Sequence record: PV764603.1
Direction: 5' to 3' (one strand)
DNA: 64,000 nt
The notes beneath the pieces were generated by a model, which was not told where the DNA came from, made no database searches, and saw nothing but the letters and a program-made list of their open reading frames with translations. Every line of letters begins with the position of its first letter. Position 1 is the first letter of the stretch. Shown here piece by piece: positions 19,688-43,945 of this stretch. Position numbers and translations under genes: made by a program.

Positions 19688-19836
19688 TTTGCCAAGTGTG
19701 CTTGGCGAATCTGGCGTAGCGTGCAGGCACAGGGCATGACTCTACACCACTATCATACACCACCCCTAGCCGGGTGTCAAACCACCCCTGTCAGCCGTTC
19801 AGGTTCCGTTCAGGTTCGATTTGGGCACACTTGGCA
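19688..19836 (-). promoter_or_regulatory. promoter module copy 1: TTGACA-17-TATGAT with upstream CAGGGGTGG and tandem CTGAACG boxes
   Basis: -35 at 19775-19780, -10 at 19752-19757, CTGAACG at 19796-19802 and 19807-19813. Confidence 0.85.
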
Positions 19837-19843
19837 GAATCTC

Positions 19844-20275
19844 TTATTCCACAATCTCCATTTCTAGGCGTTCCTGCCACGTCTTCGGGCGGAGGGTCAG
19901 GGAGTGTGACCAGTGGCCTAGCCTCATTCGTGCCACCTCGTTAGCACCACACCCGTAAGGCACAGGCAGCGAGTTGACCCATTGGTGGAATCCCTGGGAC
20001 GACTTGGCTGACTTGCCTGCCAGCTGCCTTGCCGTGAGATTGATTCCGGCGTTGAATGGCAGTGGGCAAATCCGGGTGCGATTGATGTGGTCAAGTAGCA
20101 CAGTCGCAGGCATTGTCTCAACGCAATTCTGGCATGGTCGGAATCCTGTACCCACGAACTCTTCTGGAATCTGCTCCGTTTCGCACCAGCCCTCCATGCG
20201 ACTGAATGCACGCACGCAGCAACTCGGATAGCCAAACCACAAGCCAAACAGAACGTACTGAGTAGACAATTCCAT
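19844..20275 (-). CDS. hypothetical protein (143 aa)
   Basis: GYPSCC and CQNC motifs. Confidence 0.65.
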   Translation of the reverse strand: MELSTQYVLFGLWFGYPSCCVRAFSRMEGWCETEQIPEEFVGTGFRPCQNCVETMPATVLLDHINRTRICPLPFNAGINLTARQLAGKSAKSSQGFHQWVNSLPVPYGCGANEVARMRLGHWSHSLTLRPKTWQERLEMEIVE

Positions 20276-20298
20276 TTCGGTTCCCCTAGGTAGTGGCC

Positions 20299-21807
20299 TC
20301 AGATTGAGGCCACCATTGTATCAATGTCAGCCACGATCTTGTCGGCTGGCTTCTTGAGCCACTTATCCAGCTGAGTCAGGAATGCCTTCGTCTCCTTGAT
20401 CTTCTCCACAAGCTTCTCGGCTTCCAGAGCCTTCAAGCTGCGAATCTGACGACTCAGGATCGTGTCCACCTGCTCGGCCGTGATCTTGAGGCCCTTCATC
20501 AACACCTCTTCGGTGTTCTTCGCTTTCAGCGCCTTGACGATCAAGTCGATGTTCTTGCATGCCAGCAGCATCAGTTCCTGCAACGCCAACTGCTCTTGCG
20601 TCTTGCCCTTCCGATAATTCAGGGCCTTGACCTCAAGGTCGATGCGCCACTTGGTCCACTTCTTGAAGAAGTCCAGCACGCTGGTCTGCAACAGTTCAGC
20701 TGACGGCGTTTCGGTCTCGTAGTCGAAGCTCTTTTCGATGGCGTTGATTCGGAAGCTGCATCGCTTGGAGAAGTGCTTCTCGATCACTTCAAGCGCCTTG
20801 GCCTCAACCATCCGAACACCAATGTCCTGCTTGAGAACCACTTGAATCAGGAAGGGGTCTTTCCGACTCGTCTCATCCGTACAGGACTTGACACGATCAT
20901 CCTCAGCGACTCGCCCGATCAGCTTCTCCACGTCAGTCTGCGGAGGAATGGACGTGATGTTGATCGTCCGATTCTTGGCGTCGATGGTGTAGTCCGAAGT
21001 GACGATGGCACGGCCAGCACCAGTGGACAGCAGCTGACGCCACTCCTTCCGGATTTCCTTCTGCTCGTTGCTGCCCTTGTTCAGGGTGCAGGGAGTGGAG
21101 CCGTGTCGGGCGTAGTTGATCTTGAGTGCCTTGCTGCAATCCTTCACGTCGATAGGCTGCTTCCGAAGTGCCTTCTTCGTCAGTTCGATGACGCCCTTCA
21201 TGCCAAAGGCAGGCACCCAACCCGCCGTGCCCACCGCGATGTTGCCCGAACTACCATTCAACAGCAGGTTCGGCAGCAGCGACGGGAGGATCATTGGCTC
21301 TTGATCCTTACCATCATAGTTCGGCACCATGTCCGAAACTTCAAGGTGGTCGGCCGAGAAGAAGACGTTGTAGCCATACTTACTCAACTTCAACTCGGTG
21401 TATCGCATCGCCGCAGCTTCGTCCGTCATCGAACCAAAGTTGCCTTGGCCGATGAAGTACGGTTCCGAAGCATTCACCATCTGCACCACCGAGCCATAGG
21501 CTGCGGTGTCACCGTGCGGATGGTACTTACCGATCACGTCACCAACCAGTCGCGCAGACTTCTTGGTGCCACCGCTCGGAGCCATGCCCATCTTGTATGC
21601 CGCGTAGAGGATACGGCGCTGCACAGGCAGCAGCCCATCGCGGTAGTCCGGGAAGGCACGATCCTCAATGACCGCACGGCCATAGGTGAACATGCACTCG
21701 TCGCCGTGGGTGGCCAAGTCAATATCGACTACCACGTTGTTGCCCGAAGCCTTGACCTTACCCGACTTCACTTTCTTGCCTTTCACTTTCTTGGCTACCT
21801 TAGCCAT
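20299..21807 (-). CDS. type IIA topoisomerase subunit A (GyrA/ParC-like, no C-terminal pinwheel)
   Basis: DGLLPVQRRIL, KKSARLVGDVIGKYHPHGD, AAAMRYTE catalytic Tyr. Confidence 0.95.
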   Translation of the reverse strand: MAKVAKKVKGKKVKSGKVKASGNNVVVDIDLATHGDECMFTYGRAVIEDRAFPDYRDGLLPVQRRILYAAYKMGMAPSGGTKKSARLVGDVIGKYHPHGDTAAYGSVVQMVNASEPYFIGQGNFGSMTDEAAAMRYTELKLSKYGYNVFFSADHLEVSDMVPNYDGKDQEPMILPSLLPNLLLNGSSGNIAVGTAGWVPAFGMKGVIELTKKALRKQPIDVKDCSKALKINYARHGSTPCTLNKGSNEQKEIRKEWRQLLSTGAGRAIVTSDYTIDAKNRTINITSIPPQTDVEKLIGRVAEDDRVKSCTDETSRKDPFLIQVVLKQDIGVRMVEAKALEVIEKHFSKRCSFRINAIEKSFDYETETPSAELLQTSVLDFFKKWTKWRIDLEVKALNYRKGKTQEQLALQELMLLACKNIDLIVKALKAKNTEEVLMKGLKITAEQVDTILSRQIRSLKALEAEKLVEKIKETKAFLTQLDKWLKKPADKIVADIDTMVASI

Positions 21808-22006
21808 CGTTACGTGCTCCCAAATGGCTCATGGCGAGATACCCGAATGGGTATCCCTCCGTCTCGTGATACATGCAAGCCGCGTTGACTCGGAACTCGC
21901 TGCCATCAGTGAAGGTCAGTTGGACAGCCTTTAGCTCGCCGTCCTCCCGAAACTCTTCCGCCTTGGCAATCGTCTTGCCTGCCAGCAGTGCTTGAATGTC
22001 CATCAC
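21800..22006 (-). CDS. hypothetical protein (68 aa) between the topoisomerase subunits
   Basis: overlaps both neighbours by 4-8 nt. Confidence 0.6.
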   Translation of the reverse strand: MMDIQALLAGKTIAKAEEFREDGELKAVQLTFTDGSEFRVNAACMYHETEGYPFGYLAMSHLGARNDG

Positions 22007-23895
22007 GGAATCCCCAGCAGGCGTTTTCTGGCGGTCACGTCGTCGGCCATCAGCAACGTAAACCGGGAGAGCGACTTTGCATCCTTGAGCGTGATGCGCT
22101 TGAGCTTACGGGTGGTGGCATCGAACGCTGCCTCCCGCAGCATTTCCGGAGCCGCCTCACCCCACCCCTTGAGGTGGTTGACCTTGTTGCGGTCTGCGCC
22201 CTTCGGCATCTTGGCCCACAGTTCCTTACGCGACTTCGCCATGTAATAGGTCTTGGTCTTGGCGTCGTAGTAAGTGTACTCCGGACTGTCCACTGTGTAG
22301 ATCAGACCACGCTCAAACACACCCGGCACGTACTTGACCAGCAGGGCAATCACAAGCGTTTCGATGTGGCGACCGTCAACGTCCGCGTCGGTCAGCATAA
22401 TCATCTTGCCGGTACGCAGATGGTCAAGCGGATTCTTCTTGGTCGGATCGAAGCCCAGCGCACGTAGGATGAACAACACTTCGTCACTGTTGAAGGCCGC
22501 GTTAATGTCCTTCTGCTTCATGACATTCAGAATCTTGCCGCGCAACGGCAGGATTTCCTGATGCGTCTTATCGCGGGCCTTCTTCGCCGTACCGCCTGCC
22601 GAGTCACCTTCCACCAAGAACGTCTCACGCTTATGCGGAGCGCAGTTGGCGCTGACGAACTTGGCAGGCATGTTGTTGCCCTTCTTCTTGCCCGAGTTCA
22701 GCGCAGCGATGGCCTTCTTTGAGGCAGTGAACTCCGCCTTAGCTCCACGCACAGCCGCTGCCTTCTCGCACAGCGTCTTGGCCAGAGTCTTGTTTTGTGC
22801 GAAGAACTCATCTAGCTTCTTCTGCAACGGCGTGGGCAGCATGTCGTTGACCCGGCCGTCAACCAGCTGTGCCTTGTCCTGACTGCTGAATCGGGGAGCA
22901 TCGAGCTTGGCGTTGATGATGCCTACTGCACCTTCGAGCACGTCGTCCTTTCGGAAGGACTGCTTGCTGTTGGCGTACTTGACGATGGCATTGTAGAGAG
23001 ACTGTTTCAGAATGTCTACATGCAGACCACCATTCTTGTTGTGGATCGAGTTGGTGTATGCCTCGATGTTGTCGCCTTCGGCATCTGTGAACGCCAGCGC
23101 AATCTCAGCAGGGAACCCCTTCTCGGTCAGGACGAACGGCTTGCCAGTGACAGTAGCCTTGAGCTTCTTGCACTGCGCACCGAGGAAGTCCTTGACACCA
23201 TCCTTGAACTTCCACTGCTTCTTCTTGCCATCAACGATGAGCGTGACTTCCAGCCCGGCGTTGAGGTAAGCAGCAAGTTCACACCACTGCTCGAAGTAGT
23301 CGATCGGAATCTTCGAGCCCTTGTCGAAATACTTGAGGTCCGGAATCCAGTGGATCGCCGTGCCCTTCTTGACCTTGACCCCGAACGGCAACTTGGGGGC
23401 AGTCGCCTTCTTGACCGGCTTCTTCTCCACGCCATCGGCGTACTGAGTATGCCACCACACCTTGTCTCGGAAGGTGTGAACCTCAAAGTGCTTCGACAGC
23501 GCATTGGTAGCCTTGAGGCCAACGCCGTGCGTACCACCCGCGTTCTCGTAAGCACCCTTGTCAAACTTTGCGCCTGCATGCAGACGACTGACCAGCGACT
23601 TGAGTGCCGACTCCTTGACCTTGCGGCCTTCGATTTCCAGCGTGTGAGGCTTGACTGGCATACCACCTGCCGAGTCAATGGTCCAGAATTTCCACGCCTT
23701 CGTGTCGATCAACAGGGTGACAGAAGCGCCACGGCCTGCCTTGAATTCGTCAACGATGTTGTCCAGCGGCTCGCGGCCGATGGTGCCGATACCCGTTGAA
23801 TCTGTAAGGCCGATATACATACCGGCTTTGGCCTGAACGGCTTTCAAGCCAATCAGGACTTTTACTTGCTTCTCTGAATAGCTGGCTTTCGCCAC
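22003..23895 (-). CDS. type IIA topoisomerase subunit B (GyrB/ParE-like)
   Basis: EPLDNIVDE, GTHGVG GHKL motifs; VEGDSAGG, PLRGKILN, TDADVDG Toprim; GTG start after GAGGA. Confidence 0.95.
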   Translation of the reverse strand: MAKASYSEKQVKVLIGLKAVQAKAGMYIGLTDSTGIGTIGREPLDNIVDEFKAGRGASVTLLIDTKAWKFWTIDSAGGMPVKPHTLEIEGRKVKESALKSLVSRLHAGAKFDKGAYENAGGTHGVGLKATNALSKHFEVHTFRDKVWWHTQYADGVEKKPVKKATAPKLPFGVKVKKGTAIHWIPDLKYFDKGSKIPIDYFEQWCELAAYLNAGLEVTLIVDGKKKQWKFKDGVKDFLGAQCKKLKATVTGKPFVLTEKGFPAEIALAFTDAEGDNIEAYTNSIHNKNGGLHVDILKQSLYNAIVKYANSKQSFRKDDVLEGAVGIINAKLDAPRFSSQDKAQLVDGRVNDMLPTPLQKKLDEFFAQNKTLAKTLCEKAAAVRGAKAEFTASKKAIAALNSGKKKGNNMPAKFVSANCAPHKRETFLVEGDSAGGTAKKARDKTHQEILPLRGKILNVMKQKDINAAFNSDEVLFILRALGFDPTKKNPLDHLRTGKMIMLTDADVDGRHIETLVIALLVKYVPGVFERGLIYTVDSPEYTYYDAKTKTYYMAKSRKELWAKMPKGADRNKVNHLKGWGEAAPEMLREAAFDATTRKLKRITLKDAKSLSRFTLLMADDVTARKRLLGIP

Positions 23896-23927
23896 GTCGG
23901 TTCCTCTTGGTTGAACGTCATACCCTA

Positions 23928-23936
23928 TATTTACAG
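23928..23936 (-). promoter_or_regulatory. CTGTAAATA promoter-like motif
   Basis: 33 nt upstream of the topoisomerase B start. Confidence 0.6.
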
Positions 23937-23988
23937 GATGCCTCAATGTGCAGAAAGCCCTGCGATTTCTCACAGGGCTCTTCCGGTC

Positions 23989-24675
23989 TTACTCCGCTGC
24001 GCTCCCCTGCTGGCGACGCAGCCACTTCTGCCGTTCCACGATTACGGGATGCACCATATCCCCTTCCACAAGTTCGTAGATATGGTACACCCACACCGCG
24101 TCGATGGCCTTGCCATCCGAACGGTTCTCCGCCGTCTCGTCATAGAGATACTCGAACTGCGGTTCACGTGTACCAAGGTACGCGCCCCACTTGTGCCAGC
24201 GCCAACCACCACTCGGCTCCTGCTCGTCCCTGCGCATTTCAACCATGCTGACGCAGAAGTACCGATTCTCCAGAGCGTCGATGATGGGGAACAGTTCAAA
24301 CAGCTGTTCCGGGGTGTCCACCACACCATAGCAGTTGAGGTAGCGCCTCTTCGGTTCTCCGTCCTCTCCCACGTCGTCGTAGATGCCTGCGTTGTGCTCA
24401 GGGAACTCCGGATAGTCAAGATCGAACTTGCGCTTGCCGTCCTGCTTGGAGCGGTTGATTTCATGATCGAAGTTGAGGTCGCCCGTGAACACACCCGGCA
24501 GCGTTGCGTGCTCGTACACGAATGGGGCACGGTAGGAACCATCCTCCAGCTTCTGGAACTGATCCAGATGCTCATGGAAACTTTCGTTGTGGGGATTGGC
24601 ACCGATGGGGTACTGGTCGCGCAGACCCTGCAACCATTCGGCGGTATAGGTGATGAGCTTCGGAGTAACGAGCAT
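23989..24675 (-). CDS. hypothetical protein
   Basis: YGVVD...GGWRWHKWGAYLG...EYLYDE; RBS AAGGA. Confidence 0.75.
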   Translation of the reverse strand: MLVTPKLITYTAEWLQGLRDQYPIGANPHNESFHEHLDQFQKLEDGSYRAPFVYEHATLPGVFTGDLNFDHEINRSKQDGKRKFDLDYPEFPEHNAGIYDDVGEDGEPKRRYLNCYGVVDTPEQLFELFPIIDALENRYFCVSMVEMRRDEQEPSGGWRWHKWGAYLGTREPQFEYLYDETAENRSDGKAIDAVWVYHIYELVEGDMVHPVIVERQKWLRRQQGSAAE

Positions 24676-24685
24676 TTCAATTCCT

Positions 24686-24877
24686 TTATCGTAGTTGTGC
24701 AGTGTGCTCAATGCGTTCACGCAGCTTGTCGGTGTCGAACGTCTGCTCCATCAGCAGCTTGTTGACCCACAGCTGGTACTCTGTTCGGCCGTCTACGTCA
24801 CGCTTCTTGATGACGTAGCTCTTGCCGTTGTGCGGCGCCACCTGTTCGGTGACAATCTCCCATGTTACTCCTGCCAT
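24686..24877 (-). CDS. hypothetical protein (63 aa)
   Basis: short ORF overlapping the E1 stop. Confidence 0.55.
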   Translation of the reverse strand: MAGVTWEIVTEQVAPHNGKSYVIKKRDVDGRTEYQLWVNKLLMEQTFDTDKLRERIEHTAQLR

Positions 24878-25548
24878 GTTACGCTGTGCATTCCCCATTC
24901 TTCACCCACGCTTGTCACCACCGTGTTAGGTGTCGGGCGGCCCATGACGAAATTCATGAACTGCCAGATCATCTGTGACGCGACAATCTGCGCCGTAGCT
25001 CCGACACTGAGGGTTGCCCCACAAGCCGCGCGCTCTACATTGGCGTCGTCGTCATCGAACAGGCCACCAATGTAATTAGTGCGTTGCCATTCCTTGCTGC
25101 GATCAAGCAGGAACGAGATTGCATCCCGGGCTCCCATGCGTCCATCCAGAAACGCACCACCCTCACACGGCAAGTAGTTCTCCGCGAAGGCACGGCGCGA
25201 TGCCATGTTGTCCACGCATACGAACACATATGGAGTGGCCTCAAACCTGGGCTTATTGAGGCGGCGAGGACACGCGCCCACTCGCGTGTCCGAAACTTGA
25301 CGCAGGCGATCCACCAAGGCAACAGCCTTGTTCGTCCCCACGTCATCGGGACCGTACAGGCATTGGTTCGGCAGGTTGTGGGATTCCACCACGTCATCAT
25401 CATAGACAACGAACGGTACACCGATCTTTGACAACTGCAACGCTACCGCGCTGCCCAAGGCCCCTGCCCCGACAACCACCGCAGGCGTGCGCTCAGTGGC
25501 CTTACTCTTGCTCAGGTCGAAGATACCGGTCAATCGAATTTGATCCAT
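24865..25548 (-). CDS. E1-like / ThiF-family adenylyltransferase
   Basis: GAGALG, DDDVVESHNLPNQ, NKA, VCVDN, DGRMG, and a candidate catalytic Cys in ERAACG; no Zn CxxC pairs. Confidence 0.92.
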   Translation of the reverse strand: MDQIRLTGIFDLSKSKATERTPAVVVGAGALGSAVALQLSKIGVPFVVYDDDVVESHNLPNQCLYGPDDVGTNKAVALVDRLRQVSDTRVGACPRRLNKPRFEATPYVFVCVDNMASRRAFAENYLPCEGGAFLDGRMGARDAISFLLDRSKEWQRTNYIGGLFDDDDANVERAACGATLSVGATAQIVASQMIWQFMNFVMGRPTPNTVVTSVGEEWGMHSVTWQE

Positions 25549-25560
25549 CGTTAGTGCTCC

Positions 25561-28239
25561 TTAAAGTTCATCATCCTCAATATCATCGTCGCACTCGCAA
25601 TCTTCTGGAGTGCACAAGCAGCGGTTGCAACACTTGCAGGGAGAGGACTCACAGTCCGAGCAGCAACTGCACCGAGTACGCTTGCACGTACCACAACAGC
25701 CACATTCTTCGCTCGGCTCATGTTTGCAACATACGCACTTGTGTTGCAGCATGTTACAGCCGGGGCAACTTTCGTTGCTGATGTTGTTCAACTTGAAATA
25801 ACCTTCGGTTACATGGACCAACTCTTCAAGCCTCAGCACTGTCTCCCGAGTAACAGGAATCCTGTGCCAGTCTAGTTCCGCATTGGACACCTGTGCAACG
25901 ATGTTGTCGAACTTCGGATTGCTAGTCTGACTCTTCAACGCAAGCAACTTCGAGCCTGATGCTCCCATGTTTTGATGGGAACCCTTCGACCTCCTGCGTG
26001 TACCAATTGGTGACAGGGAGGGCGCCATGTTTCCGATGAGGTCTTTCCACGGAGAAACCGCCATGTACTCAGCGTCGGGCTTGTCTCCATACGTCTTGGC
26101 CCATGCCCTCACGTACAGGTCGTTGCGATCCGGCGTAGCCAAGAAGTCGTAAAGCAGCTGCAACCTGTAACGCAAGTTACCTACAACCGAATTGGAAGCG
26201 GTGGAAATGTGATCTTCCAACTCGCTATGGAACGAACCTAAGCACAGGGAGCCATGCGACTCTTGGCTGCTCGGGACAGCCATGTGTGGATGGATGCGTA
26301 TACGCAGCCGGGGCTCAGAGTATTCCAATTCGTAGGCAAGCGGTGCTGCAATGTTGCGAATGGCGAGGTCGGTATTGACTAGAGACAGTGCAATCTGATA
26401 CTGGCCAATGTAGAACTGGCTTGGCACCGCCCGGTTATCCGTTTCGTCCTCATCGTCAAAACCTGACACTTCCGGCGGCTGGTAGTACAGGTCATTCGTT
26501 TGGACGATGACCGTGCCCGAGGGCAGCAACTCCACATGCTCAATCCACGTGTAGCTATTGAGTTCTGCCAGCGCGAGGTTCACGTCCTCCGCAGTGAAAG
26601 AACAGATGCGACGAATCTGCTCCTGCAACTCGGCCTTACGTGCACGCAAAGCCAGCAGCGACTTTGTGGTTTCCGTCAAGTCCCGTTCCACGTCCTCGTA
26701 ATCATGCAGGAGCGCCGTCGCCCGCTTAATCTGAATCCCTGTAACCAAGGAATCCTGAGTGGATACAACGTCCGTAGTCAGCGAGTTAAGCAGGGCATGA
26801 TACGTGAGGGCAGGAGAAGCCGACAGGAAGATATTACCTACCCGCACCACCGTAGGTGCGGTGCCCTTACGGAAGCGTTCCCACTTCATCACGCGGCTGG
26901 GAAAGTCACGTGTGTCAGGATAGCCCGATATGTAACCAAGGAAGCGATCCTCGTATGGGTCTAACGCAGAATCGAAGACTTCCGCGATGGCCTTCCATCC
27001 AAGGTTGACCAGCATGGATTCAGCCTTGGCTTTCGTCTCAGGAGTGACATTGAAGTGGATGCCCTCGATATGAGCGGGTCCATACAGCCTGTATTGTGTA
27101 GGCTCTGTCACTTGGAAGCCGAACGTCCTGCGCACTGCTATGCGACGCTCTTGTTCTTTACGATCGGCCTCAAACTCGCGCTGGCTGCGCCCTGTGTCGA
27201 AACTGAGGCGTTCCATCCAGTTGATGAGTTGTGTCTCGTTCTCCATAGCCTCCAGAGGAATGACCAGCGGCATGCGTCCGACGCACGCCATCGCGTACAT
27301 GTGGACTTGATCCTCCTTCATCATTACCTGTTCGACGCTAAAATGAATTTGGCTTGTTGCAGCCCGCCGACTGAACACGTCGTTTGCCAAGGCGCTTTGC
27401 AGATTGCGGAAGTCAATCTCGTATAGTGGAATGGAGTCTGTGTTGCCATTCACGAACGCCTGCTCACGGGTGGACTTGTAGTTGTCCGGATCATCGTCGC
27501 GGGCACGGTCTTGGGACAGCAAGATGAAGAAGAACGCCCACACATGGTACACGTCAGGGAACGTGTTGGAATCCATCAAATCCCACTTGCAATCTTGCAC
27601 GGGGAATACGTCGTTACCGAAGCACTGCTCAGTCATGGCTCGGGCGGCTACGCCAAGGTCGTTCGTGATGTGACCTGTACTGAACTCAGTTACCGAATTG
27701 TATTCGTGTGCGTTAGAACCCGACATGTAGGCAGAGCGAACCGTGTTCGGCATGATGCGCTCATGGCCTGCCGCTTCCTTTGCAATCACCCAAGAGCTAG
27801 GAATGACAGCAGGCTGGTTGAATGCTGGGTATAGATCAGGGGAGTCCTTGAGGTAGGCAGCCACTGTTGGCACAGCCATCCCGAGGTACTTGTAGAATAT
27901 CTCCTGCATTTCAGGAGAGCGGCGATTACGGAACAAAGTCGCCATGTTCTCCCGCAGGGAGTCCACGATGAAAAGAATGCAGGCGCGAAGCGTGGCGGTA
28001 TCCTGCACCTTGATGTAGGGCCTTTCTAGCAAAGGCACGTCTTCGGCCTCTACGTCAAGAGAGACACCCTTGCAGCAATCTCGGCACCGAACGTTCTCAG
28101 AGTACCTGTTCTCGGTGTCGTGGCACTCGCAGTCGCAATCGGAGGTGCAGCACATGCACTCGTCATCATCGCAGTAGTCCCACAACTGAACAACCTTCTG
28201 CTTCGCTGCTGCTTTGGGGAACCTTCCGTTACTCATCAT
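25561..28239 (-). CDS. 892-aa protein with an E2 (UBC-like) domain, a coiled coil and Cys-rich termini
   Basis: IHPHMAVPSSQESHGSLCLGSF and LLYDFLATPDRNDLYVRAWAKTY match UBC HPN..ICL and LL.DPNPDDPL..IA..Y. Confidence 0.75.
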   Translation of the reverse strand: MMSNGRFPKAAAKQKVVQLWDYCDDDECMCCTSDCDCECHDTENRYSENVRCRDCCKGVSLDVEAEDVPLLERPYIKVQDTATLRACILFIVDSLRENMATLFRNRRSPEMQEIFYKYLGMAVPTVAAYLKDSPDLYPAFNQPAVIPSSWVIAKEAAGHERIMPNTVRSAYMSGSNAHEYNSVTEFSTGHITNDLGVAARAMTEQCFGNDVFPVQDCKWDLMDSNTFPDVYHVWAFFFILLSQDRARDDDPDNYKSTREQAFVNGNTDSIPLYEIDFRNLQSALANDVFSRRAATSQIHFSVEQVMMKEDQVHMYAMACVGRMPLVIPLEAMENETQLINWMERLSFDTGRSQREFEADRKEQERRIAVRRTFGFQVTEPTQYRLYGPAHIEGIHFNVTPETKAKAESMLVNLGWKAIAEVFDSALDPYEDRFLGYISGYPDTRDFPSRVMKWERFRKGTAPTVVRVGNIFLSASPALTYHALLNSLTTDVVSTQDSLVTGIQIKRATALLHDYEDVERDLTETTKSLLALRARKAELQEQIRRICSFTAEDVNLALAELNSYTWIEHVELLPSGTVIVQTNDLYYQPPEVSGFDDEDETDNRAVPSQFYIGQYQIALSLVNTDLAIRNIAAPLAYELEYSEPRLRIRIHPHMAVPSSQESHGSLCLGSFHSELEDHISTASNSVVGNLRYRLQLLYDFLATPDRNDLYVRAWAKTYGDKPDAEYMAVSPWKDLIGNMAPSLSPIGTRRRSKGSHQNMGASGSKLLALKSQTSNPKFDNIVAQVSNAELDWHRIPVTRETVLRLEELVHVTEGYFKLNNISNESCPGCNMLQHKCVCCKHEPSEECGCCGTCKRTRCSCCSDCESSPCKCCNRCLCTPEDCECDDDIEDDEL

Positions 28240-33552: not shown

Positions 33553-34278
33553 TTACTTGCCGCCGTGCAAACGCAGTTCGCGCTTGCTCATGACGCAGGA
33601 GTGCATCGCATTCGGATAGCGCTGCTTGCTCGCGCTGCTCCACTTGATGCCACACTGGTTGCCTTCCACGTAGGCAACCCGCCCGGTGATGATCTTGCCC
33701 TTGTAACCACCTTCACGCGCTGCCGGGCCGTTGGCAGCGAACGACACCTTGCTCCCGACCTTGATGCCAGTGCGCTTGGCATCATACACGATCTTGGGGC
33801 CCGGCCCCTTGGACACGTACACTGCACCCTTCTTCGGCTCCGGCTTCTGGAAGGCGCCGCTCTTGACCTTGCGCTCCAGGTTCTCTGCCCACTCGCGCAC
33901 GTACTCCGCATTCACCGCTTCAAGGAACGCGACCATGTGGTAGGTGTCGATGCCGAAGGTGCGGCCGAGCTTTGCAATCTCGTTGCGCAGTTCCTTCTCG
34001 CGGAGGTCCATGTTGCCAGTCCACATTTCCTCACTGTACTTGGACTCCAGCAGTTCCGGCGTGCACAGCAAGCCACCTTCCACGAAATACTGGAACGACA
34101 GCACCGGACGGGCTGCCACGTTCTCGTCACCTTGCTTCACCTGAACCTCGGTGAAGAACACCGTCAGGATGCCATTCTCGTAGGAGGTGCTGAGGCCGAC
34201 CTTGCGTGCGGTCGAACTGATGATGCCGAAGATGACGTTGGCGAGAGCGTTGAAGGTGCTGGAGTTAATGTCTTTCAT
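33553..34278 (-). CDS. hypothetical protein (241 aa), first gene after promoter module 2
   Basis: ORF with an AAGGAAG RBS. Confidence 0.75.
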   Translation of the reverse strand: MKDINSSTFNALANVIFGIISSTARKVGLSTSYENGILTVFFTEVQVKQGDENVAARPVLSFQYFVEGGLLCTPELLESKYSEEMWTGNMDLREKELRNEIAKLGRTFGIDTYHMVAFLEAVNAEYVREWAENLERKVKSGAFQKPEPKKGAVYVSKGPGPKIVYDAKRTGIKVGSKVSFAANGPAAREGGYKGKIITGRVAYVEGNQCGIKWSSASKQRYPNAMHSCVMSKRELRLHGGK

Positions 34279-34317
34279 GATGGCTTCCTTGATTCAATAG
34301 ATGCCCGAAGGCGTGAG

Positions 34318-34468
34318 ATTTCAAAGTGTGTTTGGTATGCCCTAAGCGACAGGCACACTCCCACACCCCTATCATAACACAAGTCAAGTCGGGTGACTAC
34401 CACCCCTGACTTTCGTTCAGCTGACGTTCAGGTTCCGAGGGTGGTCATTTCGAGCATCCTTTGAAAAA
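34318..34468 (-). promoter_or_regulatory. promoter module copy 2
   Basis: TATGAT at 34371-34376, CAGGGGTGG at 34400-34408, CTGAACG at 34414-34420 and 34425-34431. Confidence 0.8.
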
Positions 34469-34495
34469 TCGAGGGGTCGGTGTTCTGACCCCTCG
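34463..34495 (-). terminator. intrinsic terminator
   Basis: CGAGGGGTC...GACCCCTCG-ATTTTT. Confidence 0.75.
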
Positions 34496-35559: not shown

Positions 35560-35569
35560 GGAGACTTCC

Positions 35570-36523: not shown

Positions 36524-36552
36524 GGTGATTCCTTTGTAATGGGTGTGGTTAT

Positions 36553-37035: not shown

Positions 37036-37453
37036 CGTCTTCTGCCTCGTTCTTGTCAAAGAAAGCTTCCGTCGGGGTCTTGCCGTGCTTGATGCACCAG
37101 TCCATGAGAAGGTCCAGTCCGGTCACGTCGCGGCGTGGGTCGTTGAGCCGCAGTTCATCCATTTCGGTCACGTCGTGTTCATGTAACACGTGGTAACGAA
37201 CGTGATCCATCTTGAAGAACTTCTGGAACGCCTCCCAGCGAGCCGCGACCTGCTGCACTTGAGCCAGTCGCTGCTCAAGATTCTTGATGCGATCAGCTTG
37301 ATCGTTGAGGTCATGCGCAAGATAATTCGCCGACACTTCCCCGATGATGTGGATACGCGACTGCTTCCCATCAGGGGTGGTCAGGGTCATGATCGGAATT
37401 TCATGATGCTTTTCCTTGGTGTCCAGATACCACCAGCGTCCTTGTCTACTCAT
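37028..37453 (-). CDS. hypothetical protein (141 aa)
   Basis: coupled ORF with a coiled-coil segment. Confidence 0.65.
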   Translation of the reverse strand: MSRQGRWWYLDTKEKHHEIPIMTLTTPDGKQSRIHIIGEVSANYLAHDLNDQADRIKNLEQRLAQVQQVAARWEAFQKFFKMDHVRYHVLHEHDVTEMDELRLNDPRRDVTGLDLLMDWCIKHGKTPTEAFFDKNEAEDDE

Positions 37454-37902: not shown

Positions 37903-37911
37903 GGTGACTTC

Positions 37912-38217
37912 CTAGGAATGATGCTGCCTGTAGACCTGCATGATGCTTTCCGGCATCGTATCCATCGTCTCAGTGAACCGGACGTAGATGCTGTCGCGCA
38001 CGCAGGTATCGCCCATGCTCCAACGGTAGATTTCGGCCATTTCATCATCTTGCAGGGTGGCAAAGAACGCATCCACCACCGCAGGGTTCAAGTAGGTGCC
38101 CGGATCAATGTCGAAGTGGTCAAGGATGTTGATGAGCAAGTCGTGCGCCGAGTCCAGTTCGTGCTTGTCCGCCTTGACCTTCGCAATGATTGCTTCGTTG
38201 ATTGCCTTGTTGCTCAC
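37912..38217 (-). CDS. hypothetical protein (101 aa)
   Basis: coupled ORF. Confidence 0.6.
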   Translation of the reverse strand: MSNKAINEAIIAKVKADKHELDSAHDLLINILDHFDIDPGTYLNPAVVDAFFATLQDDEMAEIYRWSMGDTCVRDSIYVRFTETMDTMPESIMQVYRQHHS

Positions 38218-38603
38218 AGCTTTCTCCCGAGCGCCTGAATAATCTCAGGCGGTGCGTTTGGGTCGATGTAGGTGTAACCGGCCTTGTTGCAGATGGGCGC
38301 GATACGCATTTTCTTTCGCTCGATTTCCTCACGCGCTGCTTTTTCACGGGCAGCCCATTCAGGGGTCACCTCACGTACCACATGCTTGACCGTGCTAGGC
38401 GCACGCATCGTCGCCGATGGTCCCGAGGCAGCTTTCTTCATGGCGTCAGTGATGACGTACTTGCTTTCGCGGGGCTTCAACTCAGTGAACTGTTTCTTCG
38501 GTCTCTTCTTCGCAGTGTTAGCCTCAATCTCTGCCTCACGCTTTGCAGCGTTCTCGGCTCGCTTGATCGCCCACAGTTTCTTCTTACGCTGACCTGTTGC
38601 CAT
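38214..38603 (-). CDS. basic hypothetical protein (129 aa)
   Basis: C-terminal IAPICNKAGYTYI motif. Confidence 0.65.
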   Translation of the reverse strand: MATGQRKKKLWAIKRAENAAKREAEIEANTAKKRPKKQFTELKPRESKYVITDAMKKAASGPSATMRAPSTVKHVVREVTPEWAAREKAAREEIERKKMRIAPICNKAGYTYIDPNAPPEIIQALGRKL

Positions 38604-38800
38604 TACGAGGTACGCCCCACGTAAATGTCCTTGTCGCTGCCAATCAGCAGACTCTGACCCGGCTGCAAATCGGCGATGGCGTCGAACTCTTCATCGCTGT
38701 AGTCCGTCATGTTGAACACCTGCTGCAACGTGAGGTCGTTGCGCGTGGTGCTTTCAGCAGCCGAGGGCTCCGAACGATCCTGCATGGTGAAACGGCGCAT
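38603..38800 (-). CDS. hypothetical protein (65 aa)
   Basis: coupled ORF. Confidence 0.5.
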   Translation of the reverse strand: MRRFTMQDRSEPSAAESTTRNDLTLQQVFNMTDYSDEEFDAIADLQPGQSLLIGSDKDIYVGRTS

Positions 38801-39027
38801 CAGACTTTCTCCTTCTTGAAGTAGTTGCGGAGGGTTTCCTCATAGTAGAACATGAGGTCCCGATTTCGTTTGAGGTCATCCTGCACACCTGCACCGCGCC
38901 CCTGATACTTGCGCAGGCGCTCAACTTCGCGGGTGGCCTTGGGAAGATTCAAGTAGGCCACGCGTGCCTGCTCAAACGACGGCTCACTCGGAGCCGTCAT
39001 CAAATCGTCGTCATCGAAGTCCATCAC
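38800..39027 (-). CDS. hypothetical protein (75 aa)
   Basis: coupled ORF. Confidence 0.55.
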   Translation of the reverse strand: MMDFDDDDLMTAPSEPSFEQARVAYLNLPKATREVERLRKYQGRGAGVQDDLKRNRDLMFYYEETLRNYFKKEKV

Positions 39028-40004
39028 GAACCCCGACTAGCTTCGCGCTCCCACGCATCAGCCTCACGCGTGGTCATGTGGGCATCCAGCGGGAAGTCTT
39101 CGGCTGTGTCTTCCTCACGCTGGCGCTTCTCTTCTTCGTAGATGCGAACCGATTCGGTGAATTGCGCATCTTGTTCGCGTTCTTCTTCGCGCGACCACAG
39201 TTCCCGATCACGCTCCAGCTGGTCGTGGTTCGGTTCGTCCAGCGTATCGTCATATTCGCGGTCGAGGTCTTCCGCCCAGTCCGACATTGAATCGTTGTAC
39301 TCCTGCTCGCGCCTACGTTCCTCGAAGCGGTAGTTGATGTAGTTGCTGGACAGCAGACGACGGAGGATGCTTTCCATCGCACTCCGCGATGAAGTGCAGA
39401 AGACGAAACCACTGCGGCCACGCATACTGTCGAAGTAGTGCAGCTTGCCTTGGGTGTAGTCGATGGTACCCGACGGGGAATCGTACTCGATGTTCGATTC
39501 CAACTGGCGCAGTGAACGCTGCACTACCCTCGGACCGCCGTGCCTACCATCAGTGCGCTGGTAGTGGATGCTCACCGAAGTGGCGCGTCGTCCACGCTCT
39601 GCCCACATGTACCCGATTGACTGCAACGGCATCATGAGCTTCGGGGTAGCCTTCTTGAACGGCGGCGCGTCTTCCTTGTTTTCGTGCATCATGCCGTGCA
39701 CGATCTTGCTGGTTTCCTCCAGCTTCTCGTACCACTTCTTGCTACGCCAACCGAACTGGTTCATGGGACGAACCGGACCGAGGACGATCATGTGATCGAC
39801 ACTGATGCCGTCCTCCATGATGACTGCACGGAACAGGTGATCGCCAAGGCGCAACTTGCGCAGTGCCTTGTCCGACAAGGAAGGTATATCGAACCCCGTC
39901 TTGTCGTAGCCCCAGCCGTGATCCCAGCGGTCACGCTGGCGAATCACGCGATGCTTCGGCGAGGTGTTGCTCTTGCGGGTACGGTAGTTGGTGGTCATCG
40001 TCAT
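39024..40004 (-). CDS. hypothetical protein with an acidic C-terminal region
   Basis: start moved to ATG 40004, downstream of a CTGTAAATA motif. Confidence 0.7.
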   Translation of the reverse strand: MTMTTNYRTRKSNTSPKHRVIRQRDRWDHGWGYDKTGFDIPSLSDKALRKLRLGDHLFRAVIMEDGISVDHMIVLGPVRPMNQFGWRSKKWYEKLEETSKIVHGMMHENKEDAPPFKKATPKLMMPLQSIGYMWAERGRRATSVSIHYQRTDGRHGGPRVVQRSLRQLESNIEYDSPSGTIDYTQGKLHYFDSMRGRSGFVFCTSSRSAMESILRRLLSSNYINYRFEERRREQEYNDSMSDWAEDLDREYDDTLDEPNHDQLERDRELWSREEEREQDAQFTESVRIYEEEKRQREEDTAEDFPLDAHMTTREADAWEREASRGS

Positions 40005-40018
40005 CGTCTCGTCTAGGT

Positions 40019-40027
40019 TATTTACAG
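40019..40027 (-). promoter_or_regulatory. CTGTAAATA promoter-like motif
   Basis: 15 nt upstream of ATG 40004. Confidence 0.55.
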
Positions 40028-40039
40028 GAGGTGGTTGGA

Positions 40040-40531
40040 TCAATCGCTGTTCAAGTCATGTGCGTGATTGCACTTGACGCATCCGTGTTCCCACTGGCCG
40101 TAGCCAGTGAACTTGCCCTGTCCATAGACAAGGCCGCCCGTCATCCACGAATAGGCGCCGATGCAGTGGTTGTGGTTCAACTCACTGTTGGCGTCGGTCA
40201 CCACAGGAGTGACCAGCATGGGCTGACCGAACAGCTTGTCGTGGTACAGCCCCGAGGTCCGCATGCTCTCAAGGAAGCTGCGAAGGTCGCGCCGCGCTTC
40301 TGCGATGGCATCCTCAGCGATACCGGCTGCGAGGTATTCCATATCGCGTACCGTCATCGTGGGCATGGTCAGCACGTCCTCGCTACCCCATGTGACGCGT
40401 TCGCCGTTACGGCAGCGGCGCTGAATCCAGTCATGGATATGACCGAGCCAATCTCCGCCGCGTTCGTTCATCAATACCAGCGAATCAACGTGGGAGTGGC
40501 TTACGATTTCTTCCTTGTTGAGCAGGGCCAT
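40040..40531 (-). CDS. hypothetical protein (163 aa)
   Basis: GAGGA RBS; C-terminal CVKC. Confidence 0.65.
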   Translation of the reverse strand: MALLNKEEIVSHSHVDSLVLMNERGGDWLGHIHDWIQRRCRNGERVTWGSEDVLTMPTMTVRDMEYLAAGIAEDAIAEARRDLRSFLESMRTSGLYHDKLFGQPMLVTPVVTDANSELNHNHCIGAYSWMTGGLVYGQGKFTGYGQWEHGCVKCNHAHDLNSD

Positions 40532-40546
40532 CGTAGTGTCCTCGGA

Positions 40547-40798
40547 TCAGTAGGTAGTTGTCAGGAGGCGCTTCAATAACTTGTTGTCACGTTCCGGGTT
40601 GCTTTTCAGGTCGAGCGAAACAGATTCGCCGTATGCGCAGGGTTCACCGTCTGCATTGAGTCGCACGAATCCACCGCTTTCCGGTGAGCGTCCAACGAAC
40701 GCCCCGGTCATTCGATCATGCTCCATGTACTCAGGGAAGATGATCGCTCCAAGTACAGACCCGTACTTGGCATTCAATTCACCCACAAGATATTTCAT
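40547..40798 (-). CDS. hypothetical protein (83 aa)
   Basis: GGFV...YGESVSLDLKS motif. Confidence 0.65.
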   Translation of the reverse strand: MKYLVGELNAKYGSVLGAIIFPEYMEHDRMTGAFVGRSPESGGFVRLNADGEPCAYGESVSLDLKSNPERDNKLLKRLLTTTY

Positions 40799-41232
40799 TA
40801 CCGCAGGCCCCCGATGAACTCATTGTAGGGAACAACCACGTTCTCCACTGCCGGGTGGTAAGCAGGGTTGACGCGAATCTCGTTCTTGAAGAACGGATAC
40901 GAACACGTCATGAAGACGTAGCGTTCAAGGGTGATGGCAGGTGCACCCTTGGTCGCATCCGGCTTCCACTTCCCCTGCGCCATTTGGCTGGCCAGTCGCG
41001 GATACTGGCGTGCGATGCAGGAGGAAATGCCTGCCACCTTGGGGCCGTTGGGATCATCGAAGGCACCCGCCTCGATCCAGTCCACTTCCACCTGCGCGAA
41101 CGTTGCAGCATTATCGCCCGTGGTCAGATTGCCACTGCGCGCCCACATGCTCGCACGATCTTCCTGGGAGTACGAGGTGGCGGAGGCTACGGCGGAGAAA
41201 GCGAGCAGCGCAATACCGATCAGCATTTTCAT
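40798..41232 (-). CDS. exported protein
   Basis: signal peptide MKMLIGIALLAFSAVASA. Confidence 0.7.
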   Translation of the reverse strand: MKMLIGIALLAFSAVASATSYSQEDRASMWARSGNLTTGDNAATFAQVEVDWIEAGAFDDPNGPKVAGISSCIARQYPRLASQMAQGKWKPDATKGAPAITLERYVFMTCSYPFFKNEIRVNPAYHPAVENVVVPYNEFIGGLR

Positions 41233-42032
41233 CAGTAAGTTACCTGTCGAGTGGTGAGGGCAGCGGCGCGTTCGCCAATGGCCGGATGGATCGGCATGCC
41301 GCGCATGAGGTGGTCGATAGCCTGCCCGATAAGCCAGCGGCCGTGCAGGCTTTCGGGAAGTTGCTCACCCGCGTCGATCTGTTCGCGGGTCAGTACGCTG
41401 TCGTTGCGAACGTAACCTTCCGCGATCAGAAGTTTCGCAACGAACTCATGATCGAAGTGCAGGCGGTTGTTGTCGTTGATGGCAGCGAAGTCCCCGATCC
41501 ACTGGAGCAAATCGCTCTCGTAGCCGTCGGCGGGGAATATTTGGATCAGGCGATCAATCTGGACTTGGTCAAGTTGCGCAAGTTTGACCCGGACAGCTTC
41601 CGCCTGCTTGTACGCATCCGTTTCCCTGTACTCCCGGCTACGTTCTTCGCACAGTTCGTGGAACCTGCTTTCCCATTTGGTGACGGCAGGGGAGGGCCGA
41701 TGGTTGATAATGCGCTCTGCCTCGTCACGGGTCAGGCGGACTTCAACGTCAATGTCATTGGCGCGCACGTTGAGCTTGCTTTCCCACCCGAACATCTGCT
41801 GCATGACCGCCAGCATGTTCTCGCACTTGGCGAGTACGGTGGGAATGTGTGCGCCCGGTTCCTCAATGGTGGTGAGGAACAACGTAGCGTCCCGATCGCT
41901 CTGGACCAACTCGCCGATGACGCCAGCGAGGTCGCTCAGGTGGGCCGGGCCGCGCAGTTCGCGCTTGGAAGGAATGTAAGGCTTGCCGTTCAGGGTCATC
42001 GTCATCGTCTCTTCTTGGGAAGGGTTGTGCAT
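41232..42032 (-). CDS. hypothetical protein (266 aa)
   Basis: coupled ORF. Confidence 0.7.
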   Translation of the reverse strand: MHNPSQEETMTMTLNGKPYIPSKRELRGPAHLSDLAGVIGELVQSDRDATLFLTTIEEPGAHIPTVLAKCENMLAVMQQMFGWESKLNVRANDIDVEVRLTRDEAERIINHRPSPAVTKWESRFHELCEERSREYRETDAYKQAEAVRVKLAQLDQVQIDRLIQIFPADGYESDLLQWIGDFAAINDNNRLHFDHEFVAKLLIAEGYVRNDSVLTREQIDAGEQLPESLHGRWLIGQAIDHLMRGMPIHPAIGERAAALTTRQVTY

Positions 42033-42472
42033 CAGTCCAGCAGGTTGTTGAAAGCGTCGTCGATCAGTTCATCGAGGTTGTCACCGACAACGCAGTAGCC
42101 GCCTTCACTTGCATCGAGGGTCGCGCTTTCGTAGTCCACATTGGCGCACACCATCCATGCGCCCTTGAAGACCGTGTTGCGCTTGGGGTCGCGCGGACCG
42201 ATGTAGTAGCCTTCCTTCTGGAGGGCATGGGCGCGTGCGAAGCGCTCCGAAGTCTGCTCAGTGTTCTTGCTCATGTTCGTTTCCTTGGGCACGTGGCCCG
42301 GGTAAGGGTTTTCTTTGGTCAGAATCCACTCGGGATTCTCTGCGACTTTGGCAAGTGCCTCTGGCACAGAGGCACCGAATGTGGTGATGATGCGGCGTGG
42401 CCACTCTTTGACATTCACCAAAATGAGGTGATCGTATCCCGAAGACCACTCGATTCCTACTTCAATGGTCAT
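42032..42472 (-). CDS. hypothetical protein
   Basis: start ATG 42472 overlapping the upstream stop. Confidence 0.6.
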   Translation of the reverse strand: MTIEVGIEWSSGYDHLILVNVKEWPRRIITTFGASVPEALAKVAENPEWILTKENPYPGHVPKETNMSKNTEQTSERFARAHALQKEGYYIGPRDPKRNTVFKGAWMVCANVDYESATLDASEGGYCVVGDNLDELIDDAFNNLLD

Positions 42473-42750
42473 TTGGTCGCCGCCCATTCCAGCTTGAACT
42501 CGGCCATCGCTTGGCGCAAGGCCGTGTCGATGTGTTCGTCGTTGAGGTAATCGTACACCGGCCACCCCGTCTGCATGCCTGCGCTGTCACCCGCTCGGAG
42601 CTGGGTAGCCCATAGCGCGTCCCATCGGAAACGCATCGGCGTCAGGCCATTGTTTTGATAGAGAGCTTCGGACAGCTTGAGCTTGGGGAGGATGGTAGTC
42701 AGCGCATCGCGCAGCTGAGTGTAATGTTCCGGCTTCATCTTCATCATCAA
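42469..42750 (-). CDS. hypothetical protein (93 aa)
   Basis: MKPEHY...RFRWD...YDYLNDEHIDTALR. Confidence 0.7.
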   Translation of the reverse strand: MMMKMKPEHYTQLRDALTTILPKLKLSEALYQNNGLTPMRFRWDALWATQLRAGDSAGMQTGWPVYDYLNDEHIDTALRQAMAEFKLEWAATK

Positions 42751-42917
42751 TCTCCGTCATCACAGGTGCAGGTGGACCACACGTAGCAGTAGCCGCAGGG
42801 GCGCAGGTCCGGATTCTCAACCCACTCACCAGCAGGCCGAGGATTCTCGCTGTCAGCGAGCGCGGCGCATCGCTCGCAGCCACACAGTTCACTGTGCAGC
42901 ACGTATTCCTTAGCCAT
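42747..42917 (-). CDS. small Cys-rich protein
   Basis: CGCERC...CGYC...CTC. Confidence 0.5.
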   Translation of the reverse strand: MAKEYVLHSELCGCERCAALADSENPRPAGEWVENPDLRPCGYCYVWSTCTCDDGD

Positions 42918-43131
42918 TGTCCTCGGCCTCCGTCGGCTCAGGCAGCTTGTCCCACTCCTTCGTTCCTGGGTTCCACTCGTAGCCAAGCGGCTGGCCCGGA
43001 TAGTGGATCATGTAGAAGTCGAGCGCCCGCACCGCACCTGCTCCGTAACCTGCGTTGGTGAAGGCGTCTTCAATCGTTTCACCCTCGACCAGTTCATGCG
43101 TGCCCGAACGCCAATACAGAACGTAGTTCAT
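42910..43131 (-). CDS. hypothetical protein (73 aa)
   Basis: AAGGAAAG RBS. Confidence 0.65.
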   Translation of the reverse strand: MNYVLYWRSGTHELVEGETIEDAFTNAGYGAGAVRALDFYMIHYPGQPLGYEWNPGTKEWDKLPEPTEAEDNG

Positions 43132-43141
43132 GTTTCTTTCC

Positions 43142-43465
43142 TTAGAGGATGGTGGTGCGCCGCTTGCCCTTGGGGTGCAGCACTACCGAGTGGAGGTTGT
43201 TGAGGTCGATCAGGTCCGTTGGTTCAACCGCTGCGCCGTTGATATGCACAGCGCCATTGTTCATCCATCGCCTCAACTCCGAATTGCTTGCGGGTGACTT
43301 GGGGTTTTCAGTGGACCAAAAGCCACCCGCTCCGAATTTGTGGATGCCTTGCAAGTATGCAAGCGCAGTTGTCAGTCGCTTCACAGGTAACCCCGGTACA
43401 GGTTTTCCATTTCGCCGCCCGTAACATAGAAATAGACGCCTTGCTTCTTGAAGATATGGAACCAC
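43142..43465 (-). CDS. S4-like RNA-binding domain protein
   Basis: SNSELRRWMNNGAVHING...KGKRR resembles the S4 motif of TyrRS/Hsp15. Confidence 0.55.
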   Translation of the reverse strand: MVPYLQEARRLFLCYGRRNGKPVPGLPVKRLTTALAYLQGIHKFGAGGFWSTENPKSPASNSELRRWMNNGAVHINGAAVEPTDLIDLNNLHSVVLHPKGKRRTTIL

Positions 43466-43779
43466 TCCGAGTTCTCAATCTCCTTGATGACAAGGAGCAA
43501 CGCATCGTGTCGCGTCTTACCGCCCCGAACCACAGTGTAGTAGTCGAACCCACCCGCCATTGGAATCTCCAACGACATTTCTGCGTAGTGAATCCCGTGC
43601 TTGGGAGATACCACGTTGAAGTGCATCGGCAGGATCATGGTTGCGTCGCTCGGTTCCACCCATGCGCGCTTATGCTTGCGCACCTTGCCAAGCTTGCCGG
43701 CCAGCTTTTCCGTGCGGCTCTTGCCAGTTGGTTCAGCGAGGACTCGGGTGGTGCGAATGACAATATTGCTAAGGGACAT
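43381..43779 (-). CDS. hypothetical protein, first gene after promoter module 3
   Basis: ATG 43779 with a GGAG RBS. Confidence 0.6.
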   Translation of the reverse strand: MSLSNIVIRTTRVLAEPTGKSRTEKLAGKLGKVRKHKRAWVEPSDATMILPMHFNVVSPKHGIHYAEMSLEIPMAGGFDYYTVVRGGKTRHDALLLVIKEIENSEWFHIFKKQGVYFYVTGGEMENLYRGYL

Positions 43780-43800
43780 GCTAGCTCCGATGAGTGCGTT

Positions 43801-43945
43801 ATTTTCAAAGTGTGTTTGGCCTGCTCTAGACGACAGGCAGACTTTCTCACAACTACAGTATAGCACAAATCTTCTCGGTGTGCGGCCACCCCTGATTCCC
43901 GTTCAGCTGCCGTTCAGGTTCAGTTCGAGCACCCTTTGAAAAAAT
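43801..43945 (-). promoter_or_regulatory. promoter module copy 3
   Basis: TATACT at 43857-43862, CAGGGGTGG at 43886-43894, CTGAACG at 43900-43906 and 43911-43917. Confidence 0.8.

Follow-up and report, generated by a model that had tools for sequence, protein, structure and literature searches.

Promoter modules of the window and the PhiXhv-16 genome

The stretch of DNA analysed here (the window, 64,000 nucleotides) corresponds to positions 62001-126000 of the Xanthomonas jumbo phage PhiXhv-16 (PV764603.1, 229,154 bp), and carries on its minus strand three copies of a promoter module in which tandem CTGAACG boxes lie upstream of a -10 hexamer. PhiXhv-16 has been described as a new jumbo-phage lineage whose authors report no genome homology to known phages and do not mention promoters, terminators or RNA polymerase (PMC13340338). 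A first-pass annotation made from the letters of the window had proposed the three-copy module, and all of the motifs it listed are found on the minus strand where it had placed them, far beyond chance: the phased pattern YGAAC-N6-TGAACG occurs 7 times against 0.2 expected in the 229-kb genome, with 6 of the 7 falling within modules. The box pair CTGAACG-N4-CTGAACG is exact at 19796-19813, 34414-34431 and 43900-43917 and has no other match in the window at two or fewer mismatches; CAGGGGTGG, the -10 hexamers (TATGAT, TATGAT and TATACT) and the leader CCAA(A/G)CACACTT(T/G)G are present in the window copies, and the -35 positions of copies 1-3 read TTGACA, TAGTCA and CCGCAC. To this description our analysis adds two copies outside the window, an inverted repeat at the module ends and a TGn extended -10 in copies 2 and 3.

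A whole-genome search yields five modules and no more. Module A (record 39954, plus strand) and module E (record 140049, minus strand) lie outside the window, and modules B, C and D (record 81813, 96431 and 105917, all minus strand) are copies 1, 2 and 3, respectively. All five are kept in each of the four near-identical relatives of the phage (PhiXhv-15, PhiXhv-12, Ep026 and Ep032). Modules D and E share 85.5% identity over 173 bp, and D and C share 74% over 164 bp. Further words are largely confined to the modules, which hold 5 of the 6 genome occurrences of the arm word and 6/6 occurrences of GGGTG-N5/6-CACCC. The genes downstream of the cassettes form long runs of small genes of unknown function.

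The cassette spans ~190-220 bp and is ordered as terminator (absent from copy 1), left arm, boxes, core promoter, hairpin leader, right arm and ribosome site with start codon. Copy 1 (module B, 19650-19841 on the minus strand, from left arm to start codon) has no upstream terminator. Its left arm TGCCAAGTGTGC (19825-19836) is complementary at 12/12 positions to the right arm GCACACTTGGCA (19690-19701), a match reached by 0/2000 shuffles; the right arm, which is the leader word that had been called boxA-like, additionally forms a local palindrome (GCCAAG-CACA-CTTGGC). With +1 placed 7 nt after the -10 for all promoter numbering, the copy 1 boxes (19796-19813) occupy -68 to -51, and the core promoter (19752-19780) reads TTGACA-17 bp-TATGAT without TGn.

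Copy 2 (module C, 34276-34495, minus strand) extends from an intrinsic terminator (34463-34495, a 9-bp GC-rich stem followed by a T run) to ATG 34278. One additional 11-bp unit separates its left arm (34443-34466, core TTTCAAAG) from the boxes at -67 to -50 (34414-34431), which are followed by an extended -10 (TGT-TATGAT, 34371-34379) with TAGTCA in the -35 position, a predicted 5' leader hairpin (34335-34358, -14.3 kcal/mol, z = -2.0) and the right arm (34319-34342, core CTTTGAAA). Copy 3 (module D, 43777-43998, minus strand) is built in the same order, from an intrinsic terminator with a 14-pair stem and T run (43964-43998) to ATG 43779. Its left arm (43921-43947, core TTTTCAAAG) is complementary at 20/27 positions to the right arm (43797-43823, core CTTTGAAAA), after which comes a leader tail (AACGCACTCATCGGAG) common to module E; between them lie the boxes at -67 to -50 (43900-43917), an extended -10 without -35 (TGC-TATACT, 43857-43865; CCGCAC in place of the -35) and a predicted 5' leader hairpin (43819-43842, -9.8 kcal/mol, z = -1.8). 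The terminators directly upstream of copies 2 and 3 are the two strongest in the 33-45 kb region.

A hairpin stands at the start of most leaders, and in modules C, D and E one pair of its stem is G-U, C-G and G-C, respectively. Stem-loops at the 5' end protect messages, so the leader hairpin plausibly stabilises early messages. Two gene starts are probably miscalled within leaders. For the copy 1 gene (XYR93445) the annotated GTG 19730 lies inside the leader, and ATG 19652-19650 is most likely the true start: the orthologue in the metagenome relative L099 (see below) begins M-A-N-A-T-T, compared with M-S-N-A-I-T in the copy 1 gene, and the ribosome site also backs ATG 19652. The annotated start of XYR93546 (record 139918-139974, minus strand) likewise lies inside a leader, and its real start is probably the ATG after GGAGATAATGCA.

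Diverged relatives of the module

A metagenome scan with the box pattern gave 120 matches, from which a whole-module profile screen left three relatives (L099, L140 and L069). L099 is the syntenic orthologue of the module B locus, with a topoisomerase (56% amino-acid identity), a small open reading frame (ORF) and the module. Module B and L099 share 62% identity overall, with the boxes through which the relative was found matching at 21/22 positions, and TTGACACCCGG and GGGGTGTATGATA of the core promoter invariant (11/11 and 13/13). The promoter islands, the arms and the spacing in the relatives are independent of the box-based search. L099 and L140 carry TCACCCTGC where the PhiXhv-16 modules carry CAGGGGTGG, so the status of CAGGGGTGG as a conserved element, which the first-pass annotation had assumed, does not hold in the diverged relatives.

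In L069 (contig Ga0256799_1039088, ~760-1000) no obvious ORF is seen in the ~190 nt after the promoter, and a terminator-like hairpin with a T run comes next. This promoter-to-hairpin stretch may be a short non-coding early transcript.

Searches of IMG/VR gave no match to the exact module pattern, five matches to a looser box pattern, none of which extended beyond the boxes, and no relatives in a protein search with the topoisomerase. The nearest topoisomerases among annotated phages are ~37% identical or less, too distant for DNA footprinting. No module was found in bacterial genomes of 185,579 species, which returned 117 box matches, 0 modules and 0 matches in Xanthomonas in a search that did not cover the host regulon. 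In unrelated bacteria (metagenome contigs L143 and L165 and many Acidobacteriota and Actinomycetota genomes) a tandem GAACCTGAACGG-N3-CTGAACGG is followed by TTCACC...TCGTTCA and then a gene; this arrangement may be a regulator site or an extracytoplasmic function (ECF)-type promoter that resembles the phage boxes. For the phage modules themselves TGAAC was considered as an ECF-sigma -35 and rejected, as by eye nothing is conserved 16-18 nt downstream across the eight modules.

Core promoters and their spacing to the boxes

The boxes stand in a fixed register with the promoter. Box 1 lies at -67 to -61 and box 2 at -56 to -50 in all five copies, within one base, and the -10 is positioned 54-56 nt after box 1 in 8/8 modules (A-E, L099, L140 and L069). 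Modules A, B, C, D, E, L099 and L069 each have a -10 in one of the two forms sought for a sigma-70 promoter, either with a -35 spaced 17 +/- 1 bp from it or extended by TGn. Modules A, B and L099 have TTGACA-17 bp-(C/T)AT(A/G)AT without TGn, and modules C, D, E and L069 have TGn followed by TAT(G/A)(A/C)T without a -35. Judged by sequence, each module thus carries a complete sigma-70 core promoter. As TGn appears wherever the -35 is missing, the copies with a degenerate -35 would be self-sufficient sigma-70 promoters; the either/or pattern corresponds to the sequence requirements of the sigma-70 polymerase and recurs in the diverged relatives.

In a genome-wide sigma-70 scan (229 kb) the five cassettes are among the top scores, and of these top matches they alone lie between genes in the right orientation; the promoters are gene-directed and are kept in orthologues. 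Because the genome has no better intergenic host-type promoters, and because no phage RNA polymerase was detected in PhiXhv-16 and the phage sigma-like protein gives only a weak match to region 2 with no region 4, the five cassettes are most likely host-polymerase early promoters of the phage. We consider it moderately probable that the cassettes are host sigma-70 early promoters with phased regulator boxes in a composite unit that also serves as a recombination joint.

The first-pass annotation had compared the modules with the activator-dependent middle promoters of phage T4. In T4 a MotA box stands in for the -35, at about -30, and depends on MotA together with AsiA. Both are phage promoter classes that conserve a box unrelated to sigma-70 and sometimes have a poor -35, and in the cassettes the -35 is degenerate in 3/5 copies. 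However, the cassette boxes are tandem direct repeats at -67 to -50 rather than a MotA box at -30, each missing -35 is made up for by TGn, and six-frame searches of the phage with MotA_activ, MotCF and AsiA (PF09114, PF09158 and PF09010) gave no match at E <= 1. The MotA analogy is accordingly dropped, and a reading in which the modules are middle promoters using sigma appropriation, with a boxA-type antitermination leader, is highly improbable, also on the evidence of the leader given below. What stands of the earlier proposal is that the modules are promoters, probably early ones, and that the boxes are plausibly a regulator site.

Inverted-repeat arms bracketing the promoter

The ends of the module form two complementary arms, paired at 12/12 positions in copy 1, at 17/24 in copy 2 and at 20/27 in copy 3. 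The arms of L140, which differ in sequence, pair perfectly over 13 bp, and those of L099 over 8 bp. When the arms are aligned on their invariant AAG/CTT core, four columns co-vary with two to three Watson-Crick pair types each, three of the columns being paired in 6/6 modules, and the covariation holds even for B versus C/D/E within one phage. As these columns change on both sides yet stay complementary, complementarity itself is being preserved, which argues against a boxA word. The leader word is variable (CACACTTTGAAA, GCACACTTGGCA, GACTTGCG and CAGACTTGCGAGA across modules and relatives) and changes together with the complementary word upstream of the boxes. By these comparisons the boxA-like word belongs to an inverted repeat on either side of the promoter, of which it makes up the right half.

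This leaves little of the antitermination leader suggested earlier. The word resembles rrn boxA loosely (8/13 positions of the E. coli consensus), but it differs in copy 1 and in the relatives, co-varies with the upstream arm, and no Rfam family matches the cassette. Moreover, terminators stand directly before the next cassette, and processive antitermination would defeat them.

Two features of the arms point in different directions. The left arm lies 19-20 nt before box 1 in six modules and exactly 11 bp further in copy C, and the arm-to-arm distance is 124-126 or 135-136 bp (~12 or 13 helical turns); the fixed register with the boxes and the helical-turn spacing suggest DNA sites. The covariation, together with the choice of the arm stem as closing helix by RNAalifold, suggests pairing of the arms. 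The arms may act as a pair of sites on DNA, or they may form a stem in RNA. In the RNA form of the argument, transcripts reading through from the upstream operon would form a long-range stem that would loop out the promoter and act as a processing site, an insulator or a means of translation coupling. Compensatory changes that keep complementarity even between copies in one phage speak for this form, as do the closing helix, the few G-U pairs that lengthen the stems, and the perfect 12- and 13-bp stems in the B-type copies B and L140, of which B is without a terminator and L140 has its upstream flank cut off by the contig end. However, the left arms of C, D and E share sequence with the U-tract of a strong terminator, which should leave little RNA that includes them, the consensus fold is weak (-4.1 kcal/mol) with the stem in minimum-energy folds of only 2/5 copies, and the ~12/13-turn spacing and 11-bp register of the left arm with the boxes point to DNA. 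We regard pairing of the arms as RNA as unlikely, and to the same degree doubt its corollary, that selection maintains complementarity rather than protein binding. A structured RNA spanning the whole module was rejected because of the same weak consensus fold.

Recombination at module E and likeness to PeSL cassettes

PhiXhv-16 is 99% identical to PhiXhv-15 and PhiXhv-12 on both flanks of module E, and the 2.5 kb upstream of the module (record 140109-142614, helicase gene and intergenic DNA) have been exchanged for an allele that shares only 37% amino-acid identity. The breakpoint of the helicase segment is the upstream edge of cassette E. At the downstream edge PhiXhv-15 and PhiXhv-12 have an additional 63-codon ORF and hairpin, an insert bounded by direct repeats of the leader tail that modules D and E share. 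As read from the alignment, the helicase swap is a clean allelic exchange with a distant relative. Such a mosaic junction is seen at 1/5 cassettes, and by analogy module E is a recombination junction like the PeSL (promoter-early stem-loop) cassettes of T4-type phages (Arbiol et al. 2010, PMC2839356; Comeau et al. 2014, PMC4122927). The annotated recombinase of the phage is RecA/UvsX-type.

The likeness to PeSLs extends to architecture. In either case a composite unit between genes combines a strong early promoter of the sigma-70 type with a stem-loop or terminator and a 3' ribosome site; both are repeats dispersed among small unknown genes, and both lie, in the case of module E, at insertion, deletion or replacement junctions between near-identical phages. 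In PeSLs a GGGG...CCCC stem frequently spans the -35 or lies in the spacer to the -10, and GGGTG...CACCC is its counterpart here. In contrast, the PhiXhv-16 lineage is unrelated and not T4-like (as seen from the ~37% identity of the nearest topoisomerase), the cassette has only five copies, the AT-rich UP-like tract upstream of the PeSL -35 is replaced by GC-rich phased CTGAACG boxes, and a co-varying inverted-repeat bracket is not described for PeSLs. Cassette-to-cassette joints (mini-circles) were not seen in public runs, for which contigs only were covered. The element is real and conserved and is best filed as a variant of PeSL-like composite early-promoter cassettes, distinguished by its phased upstream boxes, its co-varying inverted-repeat bracket and a candidate phage-encoded winged-helix reader. 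The cassette design of phased boxes, co-varying bracket and recombination joint is a GC-rich, non-T4 addition to the PeSL concept.

A promoter between 12-27-bp inverted repeats ~125 bp apart also has the layout of an inverton such as fimS, in which a promoter is bracketed by short inverted repeats. The arms would then be recombination sites of an invertible or mobile cassette (an inverton or an element like a miniature inverted-repeat transposable element), recombination within the repeats would keep them alike, which would account for the covariation, and one cassette does lie at a mosaic junction. We judge this reading to be very unlikely. No inverted or excised form was seen in the contigs of four independent runs, a weak test since contigs hide rare forms; one contig spans copy 3 in normal orientation, and the run contigs break at repeated parts. 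Nor was a dedicated site-specific recombinase found: the phage has no serine recombinase (Resolvase), the sole tyrosine-recombinase match is sub-threshold and lies in a 668-aa topoisomerase-like protein, and the annotated recombinase is of the type given above. Target-site duplications were not seen. In contrast to known invertons, the phage is lytic and the genes neighbouring the cassettes all run in the same direction, so that flipping would have no obvious use.

The 668-aa protein just mentioned is annotated as a topoisomerase (record 191134-193140, plus strand), and its match to Phage_integrase has E = 3e-6. A type IB topoisomerase is one possibility for this protein, and an enzyme resembling telomere resolvases is another.

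Candidate readers of the boxes

The box array consists of two exact (C)TGAAC(G) units and one degenerate box in 11-bp phase. Tandem winged-helix regulators of the OmpR/PhoB family bind 7-bp direct repeats with a 4-bp spacer, giving an 11-bp period, and the boxes have this geometry together with a fixed register to the promoter. Based on the 7 + 4-bp repeat and the fixed distance to the -10, the boxes are most likely a putative tandem site of a winged-helix (OmpR/PhoB-type) regulator. The pho box has the same two 7-bp direct repeats and 4-bp spacer, and PhoB/OmpR promoters and the cassettes alike place two to three units on one helix face at a fixed distance to the -10. However, the pho box overlaps and replaces the -35, whereas the cassette boxes lie 1-3 turns further upstream (class-I-like) of a core promoter that is complete.

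As in a PhoB/OmpR system, the phage encodes a candidate winged-helix protein. A six-frame scan of the phage gave one near-full-length match to Trans_reg_C, in the hypothetical protein XYR93411 (189 aa, record 57980-58549, plus strand; locus L288:1219-1788). The match, with E = 4e-5 to 2e-4, runs along residues 95-174 at the C-terminus and takes in 72 of the 77 positions of the profile (3-74), and the DNA-binding C-termini of MtrA and RppA match the same residues weakly. The candidate differs from family members in being below the family cut-off and without a receiver domain, none having been seen in a family scan. XYR93411 is therefore put forward as a candidate phage transcription regulator and box binder, a weak lead from sequence and not a result. 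Its gene is preceded by a CCTGTAAATAT motif of the second promoter class described below, and since it stands behind a different class of promoter the protein would act after the first wave of transcription.

In another reading the boxes are read by a host factor only, such as a Xanthomonas response regulator or a recruiter that boosts early transcription or senses the state of the host. Since the five cassettes are the only good sigma-70 promoters, the first transcription must run on host proteins alone, and the reverse complement of most boxes (CCGTTCAG) matches 6-8 of 9 positions of footprinted Pseudomonas AlgR sites (PMC4787818). On the other hand, the leading CC essential for AlgR varies among the boxes, 11-bp phasing is untypical of LytTR-type regulators, and the module is in no bacterial genome among the 185,579 species. 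A host factor as sole reader is a serious possibility, though we lean against it. AlgR itself, or another LytTR regulator, was rejected as the reader, because the boxes agree with the AlgR word only in part and do not conserve its essential CC, and because no LytTR protein is encoded by the phage.

A phased array adjoining a promoter could also be an initiator array at a replication origin, with the promoter priming by R-loop as at T4 oriF/oriG, and the arms are AT-richer, as such a reading would have it. Yet the protein annotated as DnaA (record 26263-27540, plus strand) is a clamp-loader AAA+ protein, with a DNA_pol3_delta2 match (E = 7.5e-29) and no DnaA DNA-binding domain, DnaA boxes are scattered rather than clustered, and GC skew has no inflection at the modules. 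That the modules are origins is hardly credible, and the annotation is corrected to clamp loader.

Proposed mode of action

Returning to the cassettes as host sigma-70 early promoters with regulator boxes, the following sequence of events is proposed. Since the core promoters are complete, host polymerase could fire them immediately, right after DNA entry, and would thereby start long blocks of small early genes. A winged-helix regulator bound to the boxes would contact the polymerase from upstream and tune all five promoters together. Because they are repeated, the cassettes would also act as joints for homologous recombination, as PeSL elements do. All functional steps beyond a sigma-70 promoter by sequence are ones that we infer.

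Several observations weigh against parts of this scheme. A simple two-hexamer promoter scan is not enriched over shuffles, so that conservation and context are what the promoter call depends on. Since the boxes served to find the three metagenome relatives, box conservation in these relatives is ascertained and not independent. The 5' hairpins are only modestly more stable than shuffles (z -0.1 to -2.0). For the reader, the Trans_reg_C match of XYR93411 scores 22 bits, below the Pfam cut-off of 26.2, no match for its winged helix was found among solved structures, and the link from XYR93411 to the boxes is only the usual site geometry of the family; given complete core promoters, an activator is in any case not strictly required.

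The analysis provides the first regulatory map for a new jumbo-phage lineage considered for biocontrol of lettuce leaf spot. The map consists of the five probable early promoters of host type, a second and distinct class of promoters, and a sigma-like factor that matches region 2 only weakly.

A probable second promoter class

The CCTGTAAATATAG motif occurs seven times in the genome, each time just upstream of a gene. Two copies are in the window (23925-23937 and 53984-53996, minus strand), compared with 0.01 expected, and five are on the plus strand at record 36043, 43210, 50618, 57945 and 221849, the last of which reads ACTG... in place of CCTG.... A palindrome (TGCCA-W3-TGGCA) precedes 4/7 copies. 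From its placement, CCTGTAAATATAG appears to mark a distinct second promoter class that serves other genes. Its TAAATA core recalls T4 late promoters, an analogy which suggests that the motif would suit the phage sigma-like protein.

A more elaborate scheme joins this class to the cassettes. A receiver-less phage OmpR-type protein made from the CCTGTAAATATAG class would bind all five sets of boxes and, with the arms kept complementary at a spacing of 12 or 13 helical turns, close a small loop or an RNA stem over the promoter, so that the cassette would be at once a single early-to-middle switch and a joint for module exchange, a self-contained unit of a kind not described. We hold this to be quite unlikely.

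Apart from these motifs, (C/T)AATTTTA recurs intergenically upstream of structural genes on the plus strand (record 166.4, 175.6, 184.5, 195.8 and 206.6 kb), and may be a late-promoter element.

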